55,775 nucleotides of DNA, from the NCBI GenBank assembly GCA_013416795.1, contig RQSC01000150.1:1-55775 (forward strand), written 5' to 3'. A model generated the notes under the pieces. It searched no databases. It saw only the letters and a list, made by a program, of their open reading frames with translations, and was not told the origin of the DNA. Both the position numbers and the translations under genes were made by a program. Positions 29,694 through 54,083 of the stretch are shown in pieces (positions within the stretch are counted from its first letter, which is position 1; each line of letters opens with the position of its first letter). Source of the DNA: Prasinococcaceae sp. CCMP 1430 (taxonomy: Eukaryota > Plantae > Prasinodermophyta).

Positions 29694-30202
29694 TCGGCCG
29701 CGCGCCGGTGTCCGCGGAGGACGCCGCCGAGGCGGCGCGCGCCACCGCGCGCATCGCCGAGGAGGCGGCGACAGGTGGCGGAGGCGGCGCCTTCGACGCC
29801 GTGCTGGTCGATGGCGGCGTGACCGCGCTGCAGCTGGTCGTCGGATTCGTCGTCGGAGTGTTCCCCTTCGCGTGGGCGAGCGTCGAGTTCGGCAAGCGCA
29901 TACTCATTCAGCGGCGGTGCGAAGGGTGCGGCGGCTCCGGGCTCGTCGAGATCGGGAGCAAGGGGCTCAGGCGCAAGGTGCGCTGCCGCGCGTGCGGTGG
30001 ATTCCTGCCCTGGGAGAGCTGGGAGAAGTTCTTCCTCGGCACCGGCACGCCGGGCACCGGCGGGCCGCTCCTCGTGCCCCGGGGGCAGACGGGCCGCCTC
30101 ACGTACAAGGTGCCGCCGAGGCGAGACGCGGCCGGCGGCGGCGGGCGCGCCAAGGAGGCGGCGGTCGGCGCGCGTGCGAGCGCCGAGGACTCGGAGGCGT
30201 GA
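29694..30202 (+). CDS. DnaJ-like CxxCxGxG zinc-finger membrane protein (plastid type), 5' part unresolved at an N
   Basis: TM VGFVVGVFPFAWASVEF followed by RCEGCGGSGLV..RCRACGGFLPWESW. Confidence 0.72.
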
Positions 30203-30968
30203 GGCTCGCGACGCTGAGCGGGGCCGAAACTGTCACACAACCCTGTATTGTACCCCCGTCATCCTGCTCCGGCGCGCGCGTCGCGATGCGGCCGCGAACG
30301 AGGGGGGGGGCGCCCGTCGGACGCCCCCCGTCGCCAGGCGCGCTCACGCGAACCTGTCGGTCGGCGGGCCGCCCTGGTCGCCAGGAGCGTTTGCAGGGTC
30401 GCGCTTCGCGCGCGAAGCGAGCGAGCGAGCGAGCGAGCGAACGCGCCAGCGGAATGCACGCGAAGGGGGACGGGAATGAGACATGTGCGCGTGCGACCGA
30501 TGGCAGGCGCACTCGCGCTCGCACCCGCGCTCGCGCTCGCGCGCTGCGTTCGCGTGCGGTCGGAGCGAAGGCGCCGGCCCAGGCGGGAGGGATGGCCGCA
30601 TTTGCCGCTGGTCGGTCGGTCGCGGTTCCCCGTGACCATTCCCTGCGGCCTCTGCCGCCGCGCGCGCGCGGGCGAGCCGGCCCGGCGGTTGCGGCGCGCC
30701 GAGGGGGAACGTGCGCGCGAAAGGAAAAAACGGCCGTGCCTCTTCGGCCGCCCGCGCAAGCGGCGAGCGGGGACCGGGGACCGAGGCGTGGGCGTGGGCG
30801 TTGGCGTGGGCGGGCGGGCGCCACTCTCGCAGCCCCCAGCGTGCGCGCGGCCAGAAGATTCGCGGGTCAGAGCGCTCAGCCGCGATCCATCAACCCCTCG
30901 ACCTCCCGCCACCGCCCGCCCACCTGCGCGCGCGCGCGCGCGCGCGCGTCGCCAATCGCCGATTCGCC

Positions 30969-32274
30969 ATGGTGGGCGTGAAGTGGGAGGGCGAGGGCGT
31001 GGTGGTGGGCAAGGGCGAGCGGGAGTGGCCGTACACGGCGTACGAGCTGCCGTACCAGACTTTCGCGTTCATGTACGAGCAGCAGCCAGAGAGGACAAAG
31101 TGGTTCGGCACGCGCGCGCGCTTCAACATGCACTTCCGCCGATTCCTCGTCGTGGCGACCTGGACGGGGCCGCGCAAGGAGCTGCCGCTCGATAAGGTGG
31201 AGGCGGCCATCGAGCTCTTCAACGAGGGCAAGACGGCCAAGGATGACATAGTCGACGTCGTCGTCGCGCCGGCCGACCGCTACCTCGAGCACTGCAAAGA
31301 GAAGCTCGACGAGCAGAAGTTTGCGCTCGGCACGCACGACGTGCCCCTGGACGACTCGGTCGCCGACTACTCGGCGGAGGACCGCGCGGACATCGGCTGC
31401 AAGTACGCCATCCTGGGGCACCCGCTGCGAAGGGCCAAGCTCAGGGAGACGGACGAGATCGTCGCGGCGAAGATCCGGAAGGCGCGCGGCCTCGGCATGC
31501 GCGCGGTGGTGTGCGTGGGCGAGCTCGAGGCGGGCATGGACCGCCACGCCACCCGCAATGTGGTGCTCGCGCAGCTCGCGTCGGCCGTCGGAGCGCTCAG
31601 GGAAGAGTGGGGCGAGACCGACACGAAGAGCGGGCAGGCGTGCATGCCCGAGGTGAGCTTCGCCTATTGTCCCGCGTGGGCGGTCGGCACGGGCGTCGCG
31701 TGCGAGCCCGCGGTCGTCAACGACGTACTTTTCGCCATGCGCAAGTGGCTCCTGGACAACTGCGGCGAGATCGTGGCACGAAACGTGCGGCTGCTGTACG
31801 GGGGCTCGGTCACCAAGGATAACTGCTCCGACTACGCCGACGAGTTCGAGGTGGACGGCTTCCTAGTGGGCAAGGGATCGTACGCCAAGGAGGTGAGGCC
31901 GCTCAGGCCGCGGCTGCGCGCTCCCACAGGCCCGGCCGCTCCACAGGCTGGCCCTCTGCCCCTGCTGTGCGCGCACGCACAGCAACGCGCCCTTCCGTCT
32001 GCAAGCGCCCGCGGGCGCGCGAGCGCGCGCGCGCGCGCGCGCGGGCGCGCACTGACGCGTGCGCGAGCGCGCGAGCGGCCCTCAGGGCCTGGGCGACGAC
32101 TACGGCGCCTTCTTCGACATCGCGGCGCAGTGCATTCGCCACTGCTTCCGCTACGTTCGCCATGAGGACGAGCTCAATCGCAAGGCCCAGAACCTCATGC
32201 TGACGGACCGGCGCGACGCACGGCTCGCCAGAGAGGCAGCCGAGAAGGCCGCGCTGGAGGCTGCCGCCGCGTGA
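30969..32274 (+). CDS. Triosephosphate isomerase-like protein with substituted catalytic residues, intron 31893-32085
   Basis: TIM motifs in order: VVVAP, AILGHPLRR, VVCVGE, AYCPAWAVGTG, RLLYGGSV, DGFLVG. N- and C-terminal extensions are present. Confidence 0.88.
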
Positions 32275-32577
32275 TGCGACGCCACCGCGGTGGGCGGCCT
32301 CGTGCATGCGCCGGCCGGGAGACAGGACGGCAGCAGCCGTCCATGTGCCCCCGTCATGCTCCCCTTCGGACCCGCGTGACAGCCACGATTGAACTCAATT
32401 TTTGGGAAAACCGGGTTCAAAGGGGCCGGTCTGTATATTGCGTCACAGTGTAAAAATGAAACCCACGCACGCTTTGGGTACGCGTTTGGCCAGTCGGGCC
32501 AGTCGGGCATTGCGCCACACACCGCGCGCGGCACGGCGCGCGGCAGGGCGCGGCGGGGCGGCGCTGCGCCTCGCGCC

Positions 32578-34026
32578 ATGCCGGGCGGCGCTCCGGCCGT
32601 CGGGGGTGCCGGCGAGTGGCGCCACGCGGTGCCAGCCGAATACTCCACCGTCTTCGCGGCCGCATTCCCGTGCGGCGGCGAGCGCGTGGCAGTATCTACG
32701 GCGGCCGGCGGAGTGCACGTGCTCCGCTGCGCGGATGAGGAAGAGGAAGAGGCCGAGGAGGGCTCTGGCGCGAGCAGGCCCAGCCCTGTCGGGTCCGTGG
32801 GCGATGAGCACGGACGCGTGCGTGCGCACGAGGGCGCGGCGTACGCGCTCGCGGCTGTCGACCGCACGAAGCTGCTGAGCGGGGGCGCCGACGGCTTCGT
32901 GCGGGTTTGGGACGCCGCCAACGCCGACAAAGAGGTGCGAGGGCGCGTGCGCTGCTGTGGGCACGCGAGGAGCGCACAGGGGTGGATGGGTGGGACGGGG
33001 TCGAGAGGCGCGCGCGGACAGAGGGCGCGCATGATGGTGCGCGTATCCCCATTTCGTTGTGGAGAGCTCCTCTCGATGTCCGCCTTCCACAGCTGCGACG
33101 TGCCCGCTGACGCTGGGCGCCGATCGCCCCGCCCTATCCCGGGCCGCGCCGCGCCGCGCCTGCGGCGCGCGCAGGAGTCCGACGACGGGCTCAAGTGCCT
33201 CAGTGAGTCGCGGTGCCCTGCGGGTGACGTAGGCTGGTCGCAACCCGAAGTGAACGCCGTGGCGTCGCCTGCCAGGAGTGCAGACAGCGCGCTCGTCGCG
33301 ACCGGAGCGATATTGCCCGCCCGCTTCGACCTGAATCTCGGGGAGTTCTGCGGCACGCTCGGCACGACGAGCGCCTCTCCGCACGCAGCGTACCTGCACG
33401 ACATCGCGCAGAGCGCCGACGGGCGGACGTGCGCCAGCGCGTCCGAGGACGGCACCGTCGCGCTGTGGGACACGCGCTCCGATCGTGCGACGCAGGTCTT
33501 CAATGTGGCGGCCGCTTCGCCCGCCCCTGCGAGTGGTGCCGGCGGCGGCGCGCTCGCAGCCGTCGCTCGCCCGCACGCGGGCTACGCGAGCTGCGTGGCG
33601 ATGAGCGCGGATGGAAACTGGGTGGTGGCTGGCAGTGGCGCGCGCTGCGTGACCTTCTGGAGCACGCGCATGGGCGTGGCTACCGCACGTGTGCGCACGC
33701 GCGCCACACCGCAGGCGGTGCTCGTCACCGGCGAAAGTGACGCTCTGGTCGCGTTCGCCGCCCCGTACTTGTCGCAGCTGAGCGTGGCAGGGCGCGAGGT
33801 GTGCCGGCGCAGCGTGGCCCCGCGGAGCGTCTATGCGCTCGCGCGCTGCGACAAGAGCAGCATGCTGTGTGTTGGCGGACACGGCGGGAGTGTGCAGGTG
33901 CTCACGCAGGTTGCCGCGAGGGACGCGTGGGTCGTGGACGATGGTGACGGCATGCGCCCCGACACATGGCGAGTGCCTCCGTGCGAGCCTCGGATGCTAC
34001 CGCCGCAGCCTAATCCAGTCTATTAG
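32578..34026 (+). CDS. THOC6: THO complex subunit 6-like WD40 protein, intron 32935-33174
   Basis: STVFAAAF, AHEGAAYAL..SGGADGFVRVW, PEVNAV, HAAYLHDI..SASEDGTVALWDTRS, CVAMSADGNWVVAGSG follow the THOC6 pattern. Confidence 0.78.
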   Translation: MPGGAPAVGGAGEWRHAVPAEYSTVFAAAFPCGGERVAVSTAAGGVHVLRCADEEEEEAEEGSGASRPSPVGSVGDEHGRVRAHEGAAYALAAVDRTKLLSGGADGFVRVWDAANADKEVRGRVRCCGHARSAQGWMGGTGSRGARGQRARMMVRVSPFRCGELLSMSAFHSCDVPADAGRRSPRPIPGRAAPRLRRAQESDDGLKCLSESRCPAGDVGWSQPEVNAVASPARSADSALVATGAILPARFDLNLGEFCGTLGTTSASPHAAYLHDIAQSADGRTCASASEDGTVALWDTRSDRATQVFNVAAASPAPASGAGGGALAAVARPHAGYASCVAMSADGNWVVAGSGARCVTFWSTRMGVATARVRTRATPQAVLVTGESDALVAFAAPYLSQLSVAGREVCRRSVAPRSVYALARCDKSSMLCVGGHGGSVQVLTQVAARDAWVVDDGDGMRPDTWRVPPCEPRMLPPQPNPVY

Positions 34027-51888: not shown

Positions 51889-52432
51889 GGCATTCGAGGG
51901 TGTGGTGGTGGTGTGAGGGGGTGTGGGAGGGGGGGTTGGCAGTAGCGACGGGGCTGCGGCGGTCCACGGGCGGAGCTGCGGCGGTCCAGGGACTCCGTCC
52001 AGGTCACGGGGAAATGTGGGGGAAGGTGTGTCGCTGCGGCGTCGGCACGGGCGAGCCCGGCGAGGCACTCCCCCCGACCCCACCCACCCAACCCGCCCCC
52101 CGTGCGCGCCTGGCCTGGGGCGCGCTCAGTGGCGCGCCCCTTTTTTCGCGCGCTCACTGCGGCGGTGCGGCCGCCCCCTGAACAGCCAAAAATGGCGGGG
52201 CGCGGGACGGAAAACCTCAACAGCTGTCTGTGGGGCCCAGCCGACTTGGGCGGCTGTGTCGGAGTGGCGCGGCGTGCGCGGTGCGGCGCGGGCGAGTCGA
52301 ATTTCCTGATCGTCTGCGGGGTCCGGTCCGTTCGACCCGCGCGCGAGCGAGGCGCGCGGGGCGGGCAGGGGCGGACGCGAGAGGTGAAAGGCTGGCTGGT
52401 GGGGGTCGGGCCGCCCCGCCCGGCGCGGTCGG

Positions 52433-52986
52433 NNNNNNNNNNNNNNNNNNNNNNNNNNNNNNNNNNNNNNNNNNNNNNNNNNNNNNNNNNNNNNNNNNNN
52501 NNNNNNNNNNNNNNNNNNNNNNNNNNNNNNNNNNNNNNNNNNNNNNNNNNNNNNNNNNNNNNNNNNNNNNNNNNNNNNNNNNNNNNNNNNNNNNNNNNNN
52601 NNNNNNNNNNNNNNNNNNNNNNNNNNNNNNNNNNNNNNNNNNNNNNNNNNNNNNNNNNNNNNNNNNNNNNNNNNNNNNNNNNNNNNNNNNNNNNNNNNNN
52701 NNNNNNNNNNNNNNNNNNNNNNNNNNNNNNNNNNNNNNNNNNNNNNNNNNNNNNNNNNNNNNNNNNNNNNNNNNNNNNNNNNNNNNNNNNNNNNNNNNNN
52801 NNNNNNNNNNNNNNNNNNNNNNNNNNNNNNNNNNNNNNNNNNNNNNNNNNNNNNNNNNNNNNNNNNNNNNNNNNNNNNNNNNNNNNNNNNNNNNNNNNNN
52901 NNNNNNNNNNNNNNNNNNNNNNNNNNNNNNNNNNNNNNNNNNNNNNNNNNNNNNNNNNNNNNNNNNNNNNNNNNNNNNNNNNNNNN
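52433..52986. other. Scaffold gap
   Basis: Run of N. Confidence 0.99.
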
Positions 52987-53407
52987 CCGCGGCAGCGGCG
53001 GCGGCGGCGGCGGCCCGCGCACGGGATGGGCCGCGTACGGCGTGGGCGTGCTGCACGGCAGCGCGGGCACGGGCCACCTCTTCGGCGTGCTTCCGAGCCT
53101 CGCGCTGCCGCCGTTCCTGGCGGGCGTCTTCCTCCTGAGCTACCTGCTCGCGGCGGTCGCCATGATGTCCTCGGTGGGCTTCATGCTCGGCCGCATGGTG
53201 CGCTGGGGCGGCGCCCGCGCGATCAGCCTGCTCACGCTGGGCAGCGGCCTGCTCGCGGTGTGCATCGGGCTCTACTGGGTGGCGGCGTCCGTGTCGCACC
53301 CGGCGAGCGAGTTCGACGAGCGCACAGGCGGCGGCGGCGGCGGCGGCGGCGGCACTGCAAGGGACTTCGCCGCCGCGTCGCTGGTGGCGGCGCACGCCGC
53401 TGGATGA
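52987..53407 (+). CDS. UreH/NicO-like nickel/cobalt transporter, C-terminal fragment
   Basis: GVLHGSAGTGHLFGVLPSLALP followed by two further hydrophobic helices; TGTAA lies 21 nt after the stop. Confidence 0.62.
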
Positions 53408-53589
53408 TCGCGTAGGGACGCGCCATCTGTAAATATGTACCGTACTACTGGTGTGTACAGCGCAGACACGTAACACGCATCCGCACGCCACGCATGCCTC
53501 CCCTCCCAGCTCCCCTCGCGACCAGGGGCAGGCTCATGGCCGCCCTCGCAAACGCATGTGCACGCACATGATTCCATTCGAAAGCCTGC

Positions 53590-53684
53590 ATTTTTTTTAA
53601 ATTTAAAAATTAAAAATACTCAAATTTTATATTAAAAAAGTTAAAATATGAAAATATAATTTAAAAGAAATTAAAATTATTATA
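53590..53684. other. ~95-bp almost pure A/T island
   Basis: TTTTTTTTAAATTTAAAAATTAAAAATACTC... embedded in a GC-rich background. Confidence 0.9.
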
Positions 53685-54083
53685 GGGATCTGCGGCTAGG
53701 TAAAACGCATGCGGCGGGTGCGGCGGCCGGCGCGGGAATAAGGGCCTCGCGGGCGGCATTTAGGACCCGGGGGCGGAATTAAGGTCGAGGGGTGGGAATT
53801 AAGGTCGGTCCGTTACGAATTAGGATTGGCGCGCGCGCCGGGGGTGGGTGGGTGAGCTCATGGACGGCGTGCTGTGCATGGCGGGCTTTTTTACCACGTC
53901 GTAAAAGTACCGATTGAGAAGGCTCCTCCGGCTTGGCTGCCGTACAGCGCGGCGTCGGGGCGTGAGCGCGCGCGCGCGCGCGTGCTGCCTGAGAGCACGA
54001 GAGACAGAGAGAGAGAGATAGTCTCACCTTTTGCTCGACGGGGGGGGGGGGAAACCCATCCACGGACGCGAGACCGTCCGTAG

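Follow-up and report, generated by a model that had tools for sequence, protein, structure and literature searches.

Can a triosephosphate isomerase (TIM) barrel be kept by selection after the residues that make it an isomerase have been lost? This question is raised by a gene at positions 30969-32274 of the forward strand of contig RQSC01000150.1 (assembly GCA_013416795.1), obtained from Prasinococcaceae sp. CCMP 1430, a member of the Prasinodermophyta. The whole stretch of DNA analysed, 55,775 nucleotides (nt) in length, is referred to below as the window. TIM, the textbook "perfect enzyme", is among the most uniformly conserved of all catalysts. The answer proposed here, to which a probability of about 0.6 is assigned, is that the locus is a genuine nuclear gene of Prasinoderma coloniale and that its product is a TIM-derived pseudoenzyme which works by binding rather than by catalysis. 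The P. coloniale gene model is already public and uncharacterised; the literature searched contained no description of a TIM pseudoenzyme and no link between Prasinoderma and TIM.

The term pseudoenzyme is used in the sense given in excerpts of PMC5106787 and PMC10211241. What was found at the locus is a homologue belonging to an enzyme family, devoid of key catalytic residues, and encoded by an open reading frame (ORF) that is intact and under selection across taxa.

Residues lost and kept in the former active site

In TIM, Glu165 acts as the base, the substrate is bound and polarised by His95, Lys13 and Asn11, and the partner subunit contributes Thr75 to complete the site; replacing either Glu165 or Lys13 on its own is enough to lower kcat/Km by several orders of magnitude. 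The residues of the Prasinoderma protein were compared with those of canonical TIMs in one alignment with 97 canonical sequences and a second with 89, and a profile-guided residue scan covered all 269 TIM-family proteins retrieved. Environmental relatives of the gene fall into two 90% clusters, consisting of 15 P. coloniale variants and 15 sequences from a sister taxon, 11 of which span the key sites; nearly all cluster members come from marine metagenomes. The sister-taxon orthologue (P0002) has 371 amino acids and is 75% identical.

The near-invariant positions Asn11, Lys13, Gln64, Gly72, Gly76, Ser96, Glu97, Glu165, His185, Gly233 and Ala234 were found to be replaced. Retained were His95, Arg98-Arg99, Glu104, Lys112, Cys126, loop 6 (P-x-W-x-x-G-T-G), loop 7 (Y-G-G-S-V) and the L-V-G of loop 8. 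The motifs concerned are located as follows:

31158..31166, + strand: T-W-T in place of N-W-K (Asn11 to Thr, Lys13 to Thr), codons 64-66, placed by alignment
31416..31433, + strand: GHPLRR in place of GHSERR (His95 kept, Ser96 to Pro, Glu97 to Leu), invariant in all variants of both taxa
31662..31694, + strand: AYCPAWAVGTG, strand 6 and loop 6, with Glu165 changed to Cys (codon TGT, 31668-31670)
31797..31811, + strand: YGGSV, the loop 7 phosphate gripper, retained, placed by alignment
31866..31880, + strand: VGKGS, loop 8, with Gly232 kept, Gly233 changed to Lys and Ala234 to Gly, placed by alignment

An earlier, first-pass annotation of the window had read GNWK as altered to ATWT (at about 31158-31166), GHSERR to GHPLRR with the His kept at 31419, and AYEPVWAIGTG to AYCPAWAVGTG with TGT at 31668-31670, and had noted that YGGSV was kept. 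Each of these readings was reproduced: T-W-T lies at codons 64-66, and the retained His95 is His151 of the protein, with codon CAC at 31419-31421, and is kept in every variant. The annotation had also pointed to VGKGS in place of VGGAS. This motif is indeed present, but Lys, Arg or Ser at position 233 was also found in TIMs that keep every catalytic residue, so that it is not diagnostic of inactivity.

Three of the four catalytic residues have been lost, and His95 is kept. Among the canonical rows of the alignment, Asn11 is present in 96%, Lys13 in 98% and Glu165 in 99%, and these three residues, together with Glu97, are gone from both Prasinoderma-type orthologues. In the 269-protein scan, complete TIM-family sequences were almost never without a catalytic residue, and the joint loss of Asn11, Lys13, Glu97 and Glu165 was confined to the cluster of this gene. 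Taken with known TIM enzymology, the replacement of Glu165, Lys13 and Asn11 and the loss of Thr75 argue that the protein would not carry out triosephosphate isomerisation.

The residues that now occupy these positions differ in how constant they are. Codon 66 (the Lys13 site) is Thr in all variants, while codon 64 (the Asn11 site) encodes Thr in the reference strain; in the other 14 of the 15 P. coloniale variants, as in the sister taxon, it encodes Ser. Codon 302, at the Gly233 site, is Lys in both taxa, and at codon 303 one taxon has Gly and the other His. At codon 234, the position of the Glu165 base, all 15 P. coloniale variants carry TGT (Cys) and all 11 sister-taxon variants ACG (Thr), codons that differ at all three nucleotides. 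The Cys, though fixed in P. coloniale, gives way to Thr in the sister taxon and does not qualify as a functionally conserved residue. The suggestion of the first-pass annotation that the protein might be a Cys-nucleophile enzyme, or might sense redox state or methylglyoxal through this Cys, is weakened by the sister-taxon Thr, and a nucleophilic or redox-active Cys was rejected as a conserved function.

That annotation had itself raised base-calling errors at the key codons as an objection. Thr66, His151-Pro-Leu, Cys234 and Lys302 are shared by independent Tara and Logan contigs (L003 and L004) and by 13 further environmental variants; the unusual residues are therefore not base-calling errors.

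Distribution, phylogeny and selection

The gene is restricted to P. coloniale and one close relative, a single genus-level cluster. In a word-indexed search, only an unspliced call of the same gene (P0001) and the orthologue P0002 ranked above ordinary TIMs. An exhaustive phmmer search over 1.84 billion representatives returned its own cluster (P0002) at E 1.8e-252, then a tandem, active-type TIM (P0121) at E 1.8e-41, and ordinary TIMs no better than E 1e-27; P0121 excepted, no relative was found between the gene's own cluster and ordinary TIMs. In a maximum-likelihood tree, the stem leading to the pair of orthologues measured 2.27 substitutions per site, compared with 0.36 for the median tip and only 0.07 and 0.22 for the pair's own tips. 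These branch lengths indicate a burst of change followed by slow evolution. Because the stem is so long, the place of the pair among eukaryote-type TIMs stayed unresolved in the tree, and no donor or parent clade is named.

Orthologues and their ratio of nonsynonymous to synonymous divergence (dN/dS) were among the checks proposed in the first-pass annotation. An orthologue does exist, as described, without conservation of the Cys, and the Nei-Gojobori dN/dS between the two taxa was 0.29 at a dS of 0.62, in agreement with purifying selection. By segment, the ratio was 0.33 in the barrel, 0.53 in the N-terminal extension and lowest, 0.09, in the C-terminal tail. The GC content at third codon positions is about 0.92, for which reason dS is probably underestimated and omega overestimated, making 0.29 a conservative value. 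Within P. coloniale, the exons differ by 0.8% (5 nonsynonymous and 4 synonymous changes), the intron by 3.1% and the 3' flank by 10%. The ORF, described earlier as intact, is open in all 26 full-length environmental variants (15 from P. coloniale and 11 from the sister taxon), and the GT/AG splice sites are conserved while an indel in the intron breaks the read-through frame. The dN/dS, the lower divergence of exons than of the intron and the intact frames together indicate that the gene is maintained under purifying selection.

Family membership and predicted fold

The gene product is a member of the TIM family far beyond chance. Residues 77-306 match Pfam PF00121 with 145.4 bits against a gathering cut-off of 20.1 (E 2.6e-42), and the best relatives in the structural database are solved TIMs (E ~1e-34, ~35% identity). 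The equivalog cut-off of NCBIfam TIGR00419, 130.6 bits, is reached neither by the P. coloniale protein (117.1 bits) nor by that of the sister taxon (98 bits).

AlphaFold2 (AF2) models were built for both the P. coloniale protein and the sister orthologue. The predicted local distance difference test (pLDDT) values of the two models are 82.6 and 79.6, and each shows a full (beta/alpha)8 barrel, with pLDDT >90 across most of the barrel. When the model of the sister orthologue was compared with TIM crystal structures by Foldseek, target-normalised template modelling (TM) scores of 0.86-0.92 were obtained at a root-mean-square deviation of ~2-4 Å. The TIM barrel fold is thus predicted to be intact. 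A structural neighbour other than TIM was considered and discarded, the best 50 of at least 500 Foldseek matches in the PDB and all rows from the ESM Atlas being TIMs or TIM fusions.

As far as can be judged from sequence, then, the "maintained non-isomerase TIM barrel" of the first-pass annotation stands, with the residues gone in both orthologues, purifying selection and the predicted fold on its side; the Cys-centred roles attached to it have been weakened, and its other suggestions, a sugar-phosphate sensor or a structural subunit, are still candidate roles.

Remodelled loops, insert and terminal extensions

Outside the former active site, the protein departs from canonical TIMs at the following features:

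30969..31136, + strand: 56-amino-acid aromatic-rich N-terminal extension with no hydrophobic signal-like stretch, missing from canonical TIMs
31335..31376, + strand: loop 3, which interdigitates in the dimer, 3 residues shorter and without G-A-F-T-G-E including Thr75 (12 residues; canonical median 15, range 14-27)
31611..31646, + strand: 12-amino-acid insert GETDTKSGQACM in the loop between helix 5 and strand 6, on the non-catalytic face, placed by alignment with canonical TIMs
32131..32145, + strand: C-I-R-H-C motif in helix 8 (Cys i, His i+3, Cys i+4), conserved in both taxa
32152..32271, + strand: charged helical extension of about 40 amino acids past canonical helix 8, 80% identical to the orthologue

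The aromatic N-terminal extension of about 55 amino acids and the helical C-terminal tail announced by the first-pass annotation are both present. Residues 19-56 of the N-terminal extension are 82% identical to the orthologue, and the low-confidence AF2 model of the region shows a weak sheet of three strands and then a disordered segment. After Phe317 there are 54 residues, compared with a canonical median of 12 and a maximum of 25, and AF2 predicts a single uninterrupted C-terminal helix spanning residues 312-369, with a pLDDT of 74-96 in the extension. A Pfam search at E <=1 gave only chance-level matches for a known domain in the N-terminal extension or the C-terminal tail; feature and structure searches of the ESM Atlas with residues 1-58 returned scores <0.9 and TM <0.5, offering no lead; and a search of the Atlas with the whole protein, PF00121 clusters being set aside, yielded nothing usable. 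Should the long helices pair, the C-I-R-H-C motif could bind a metal or act as a redox site.

The equivalents of Gln64, Gly72 and Gly76 around the shortened loop 3 are all replaced, and the oligomeric state would be expected to be altered. The insert lengthens the span from Trp214 to Ala232 to 17 residues (canonical median 5), and 13 of its 15 residues with flanks (214-228) are identical to the orthologue. Loop 1 carries 3 extra residues compared with canonical TIMs, and 8 more lie between loop 8 and helix 8, where the intron sits. In a TIM barrel, the non-catalytic face carries the start of strand 1, the loops leading from helix to strand and the end of helix 8, so that the N-terminal extension, the insert and the C-terminal helix should all emerge from the face opposite the catalytic loops.

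Gene structure and expression

The gene is modelled with two exons:

30969..31892, + strand: exon 1, codons 1-308, N-terminal extension and TIM barrel as far as loop 8, from the ORF and its translation
31893..32085, + strand: GT-AG intron of 193 nt containing a (GC)n microsatellite, in the lengthened linker between loop 8 and helix 8
32086..32274, + strand: exon 2, codons 309-370 and TGA, helix 8 and the long C-terminal extension, aligning to the C-terminus of P0002

The start codon ATG lies at 30969 and the stop codon TGA at 32272-32274; the intron begins with the donor GTGAGG at 31893 and ends with the acceptor CAG at 32085, and the spliced coding sequence of 1113 nt encodes 370 amino acids and a stop. 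This model is supported by four comparative lines. The orthologue P0002 is encoded uninterrupted on the environmental contigs L001 and L002; DNA homology between L001 and the window begins exactly at the ATG, breaks off at 31893 and is picked up again at 32098, the 193-nt intron segment being precisely missing from the intronless L001. The same contig has an in-frame stop 11 codons 5' of the equivalent start Met. In L003, a Tara Oceans contig of P. coloniale with 97% DNA identity, the intron is 191 nt instead of 193 nt long, and the GT, the AG and the spliced product are all intact despite this change of 2 nt; the read-through frame is thereby altered and not conserved. Finally, the spliced product is identical, letter for letter, to PRCOL_00004705-RA of Prasinoderma coloniale in EukProt (EP00793; P0270). 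This identity also assigns the window to P. coloniale, in keeping with its GC content of ~70%. Since the intron is present in P. coloniale and missing in the sister taxon (L001, ~1718-1730), it was gained or lost after the two split. It was also considered as a possible repeated introner, and this was rejected, as it has only (GC)n microsatellite matches elsewhere in the window.

In three seawater metatranscriptome runs, short contigs were found to match 31639-31983 at ~100% identity, all of them crossing the donor site (within 31749-31983) and reaching 54-91 nt into the intron. The first-pass description of the gene as properly spliced is supported by comparison (L001, L003 and EukProt) and not by RNA, no spliced RNA having been observed.

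Long (GC)n or (GCGCGC)n tracts are present at 30925-30955, directly 5' of the start codon, and at 32001-32080, in the intron, and similar tracts are scattered across the window. They interrupt the alignment of reads and contigs to it.

Proposed origin and function, and rival explanations

Under the pseudoenzyme reading, an ancestral copy of a eukaryote-type TIM would have undergone a burst of change, during which its proton-transfer machinery (Asn11, Lys13, Glu97 and the Glu165 base) was shed, the loop-3 contacts that build the canonical dimer were lost, and the N-terminal extension, the 12-amino-acid insert and the long C-terminal helix were acquired; the protein would then have evolved slowly. 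The burst, the later constraint, the appendages and the remodelled dimer loop fit a pseudoenzyme recruited for binding. With regard to the ligand, 5/6 proton-transfer or second-shell residues are changed and the gripper motifs P-x-W-x-x-G-T-G, Y-G-G-S-V and L-V-G are kept: loops 6 and 7 retain G-T-G and Y-G-G-S, Gly232 is in place, and Gly233 is Lys as in some intact TIMs. The survival of these motifs along a very long stem on which the other residues did not survive makes the binding of a phospho-ligand possible. It is tentatively suggested, as one part of the reading, that such a ligand may be held by His95 and gripper loops 6 and 7 and that the protein may sense a phospho-metabolite. Binding of a partner, or self-association, through the new appendages is also possible and would not exclude ligand binding. 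A fuller proposal, which is speculative and rather doubtful as a whole, is that this is the first natural pseudoenzyme of the TIM family, in which proton-transfer chemistry has been lost and the phosphodianion gripper of loops 6 and 7 with His95 kept, and that it would act as a sensor of triose-phosphates or phospho-acids, loop closure being relayed via the oligomerising C-terminal helix and the N-terminal arm on the opposite face.

Several points weigh against a binding pseudoenzyme. The catalytic-face loops are not more conserved between the taxa than the rest of the barrel (73% vs 77% identity, p = 0.5), which gives no sign of the extra constraint expected for a live active site or ligand pocket. 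Lys13, which is also a phosphate ligand, is lost, and the glycine-rich loops could have been kept for structural reasons alone. With two taxa only, site-wise inference is weak, and the view that the protein is not a triosephosphate isomerase is deduced from textbook TIM enzymology. No spliced joint was seen among the contigs of the three RNA runs (one run search and one alignment of 1651 nt), and the donor-crossing contigs could represent pre-mRNA, intron retention or DNA carry-over.

The protein might instead be a regulatory or scaffolding partner that binds no ligand itself, such as a dead subunit which associates with an active TIM in the same cell and tunes its activity or location. According to excerpts of PMC3663545, PMC6221367 and bioRxiv 10.1101/717082, no fate of metabolic pseudoenzymes is documented more often than the modulation of an active twin. 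TIM itself is obligately dimeric, and the barrel core and many residues neighbouring the interface (the equivalents of Arg98, Arg99, Glu104, Lys112 and Cys126) are kept. However, with loop 3 shortened by 3 residues, Thr75, Gly72 and Gly76 lost and the partner-side Asn11 and Glu97 gone, a canonical TIM-type heterodimer interface is unlikely to survive, and this explanation is judged unlikely. The retention of His95 and of the phosphate-gripper loops would suit a neo-functionalised enzyme in which His95 acts together with a small polar residue, Cys or Thr, or with migrated residues, in a different reaction on a phosphorylated substrate. A long stem followed by constraint fits neofunctionalisation, and excerpts of PMC10211241 note that in some apparent pseudoenzymes the catalytic residues have migrated. 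The position of the base is nevertheless occupied by Cys in one taxon and Thr in the other, at a distance of three nucleotide changes, the Asn11 site is polymorphic for Thr and Ser, the catalytic-face loops show no extra conservation and no candidate acid or base was identified, so that a new catalytic activity has a low probability.

Drift at the former active-site positions, a ratio of nonsynonymous to synonymous changes of 5:4 within the species, and the unspliced contigs in RNA libraries that gave no spliced RNA might be the traces of a duplicate in decay, scarcely expressed if at all and turning into a pseudogene. Such decay is very improbable in view of an ORF intact in 26/26 variants from two taxa ~0.6 dS apart, a dN/dS of 0.29 overall and 0.09 in the C-terminal tail, and exons four-fold less diverged than the intron with conserved splice sites. 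There is finally the name 'triosephosphate isomerase' given automatically to the sister-taxon protein in JGI/IMG, which implies an enzyme that still works, a view that the strong PF00121 match also favours; with the Glu165 base, Lys13 and Asn11 all replaced and the TIGR00419 equivalog cut-off not reached, a functioning isomerase is hardly credible.

Genomic neighbourhood

A small Cys-rich gene with C-x-x-C-x-G-x-G-type motifs adjoins the TIM-like gene in both taxa (29864-30181, + strand, in the window; 2072-2410, - strand, in L001). The proteins are 71% identical between taxa and have no Pfam match. In P. coloniale this gene is upstream of the TIM-like gene and shares its strand; in the sister taxon it is downstream and on the other strand, a change of side and strand which points to a local rearrangement. 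A long ORF encoding WD40 repeats (PF00400, E 9.5e-13) follows as the downstream neighbour in the window, at 32389-34026 (+ strand); no functional link between it and the TIM-like gene was evident. The window has a GC content of ~70%, falling to 0.49 at 52001-54000.

Comparison with known systems and significance

Canonical eukaryote-type TIM (EC 5.3.1.1), such as the cytosolic enzyme of Arabidopsis (6cg9), belongs to the same PF00121 family and shares with the Prasinoderma protein the predicted (beta/alpha)8 fold, ~35% identity in the barrel, His95, Arg98-Arg99, loop 6, the YGGSV of loop 7 and most core residues. The two differ at Asn11, Lys13, Ser96, Glu97 and Glu165, in loops 1 and 3, in the insert, in the linker between loop 8 and helix 8 and at both ends. 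The engineered monoTIM (PDB 1ttj), which was among the Foldseek matches, is likewise a TIM barrel with a shortened loop 3. Borchert et al. reportedly found that the shortening of loop 3 in monoTIM abolishes the canonical dimer. In monoTIM the loop was cut by design and the catalytic residues and a residual activity were kept, whereas in Prasinoderma the cut is natural and smaller (3 residues) and the catalytic residues have been lost.

The TPI-GAPDH fusions of stramenopiles and the tandem TIM P0121 are further unusual protist architectures built on PF00121. They keep Lys13, His95 and Glu165 and are presumably active, unlike the Prasinoderma protein, a single barrel without Lys13 and Glu165. 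In P0121, which has 640 amino acids, two tandem TIM domains come after an N-terminal region; N-W-K, G-H-S-D-R-R and A/S-Y-E-P-V-W are kept in both domains, alongside Y-T-G-S and G-E-G variants.

A parallel in evolutionary terms is provided by the AdoMetDC and DHS prozymes of trypanosomatids and by plant PDX1.2, each of which is also a lineage-restricted duplicate of a core enzyme that has lost catalytic residues and is kept by selection. As described in excerpts of PMC3663545, PMC6221367 and 10.1101/717082, the prozymes and PDX1.2 form hetero-oligomers with their active twins and activate them. In the Prasinoderma protein, by contrast, the canonical interface loop is remodelled.

The significance of the finding is limited by its narrow distribution in one genus-level cluster. 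If the proposed reading is true, TIM would join the enzyme families known to spawn pseudoenzymes, and a selected TIM barrel that keeps its phosphate-gripper loops but has lost the base, Lys13 and Asn11 would be a natural experiment in which ligand-driven loop closure is parted from catalysis. The automatic label 'triosephosphate isomerase' would in that case cause glycolytic and Calvin-cycle capacity to be miscounted in reconstructions of Prasinodermophyta and in marine metagenomes.

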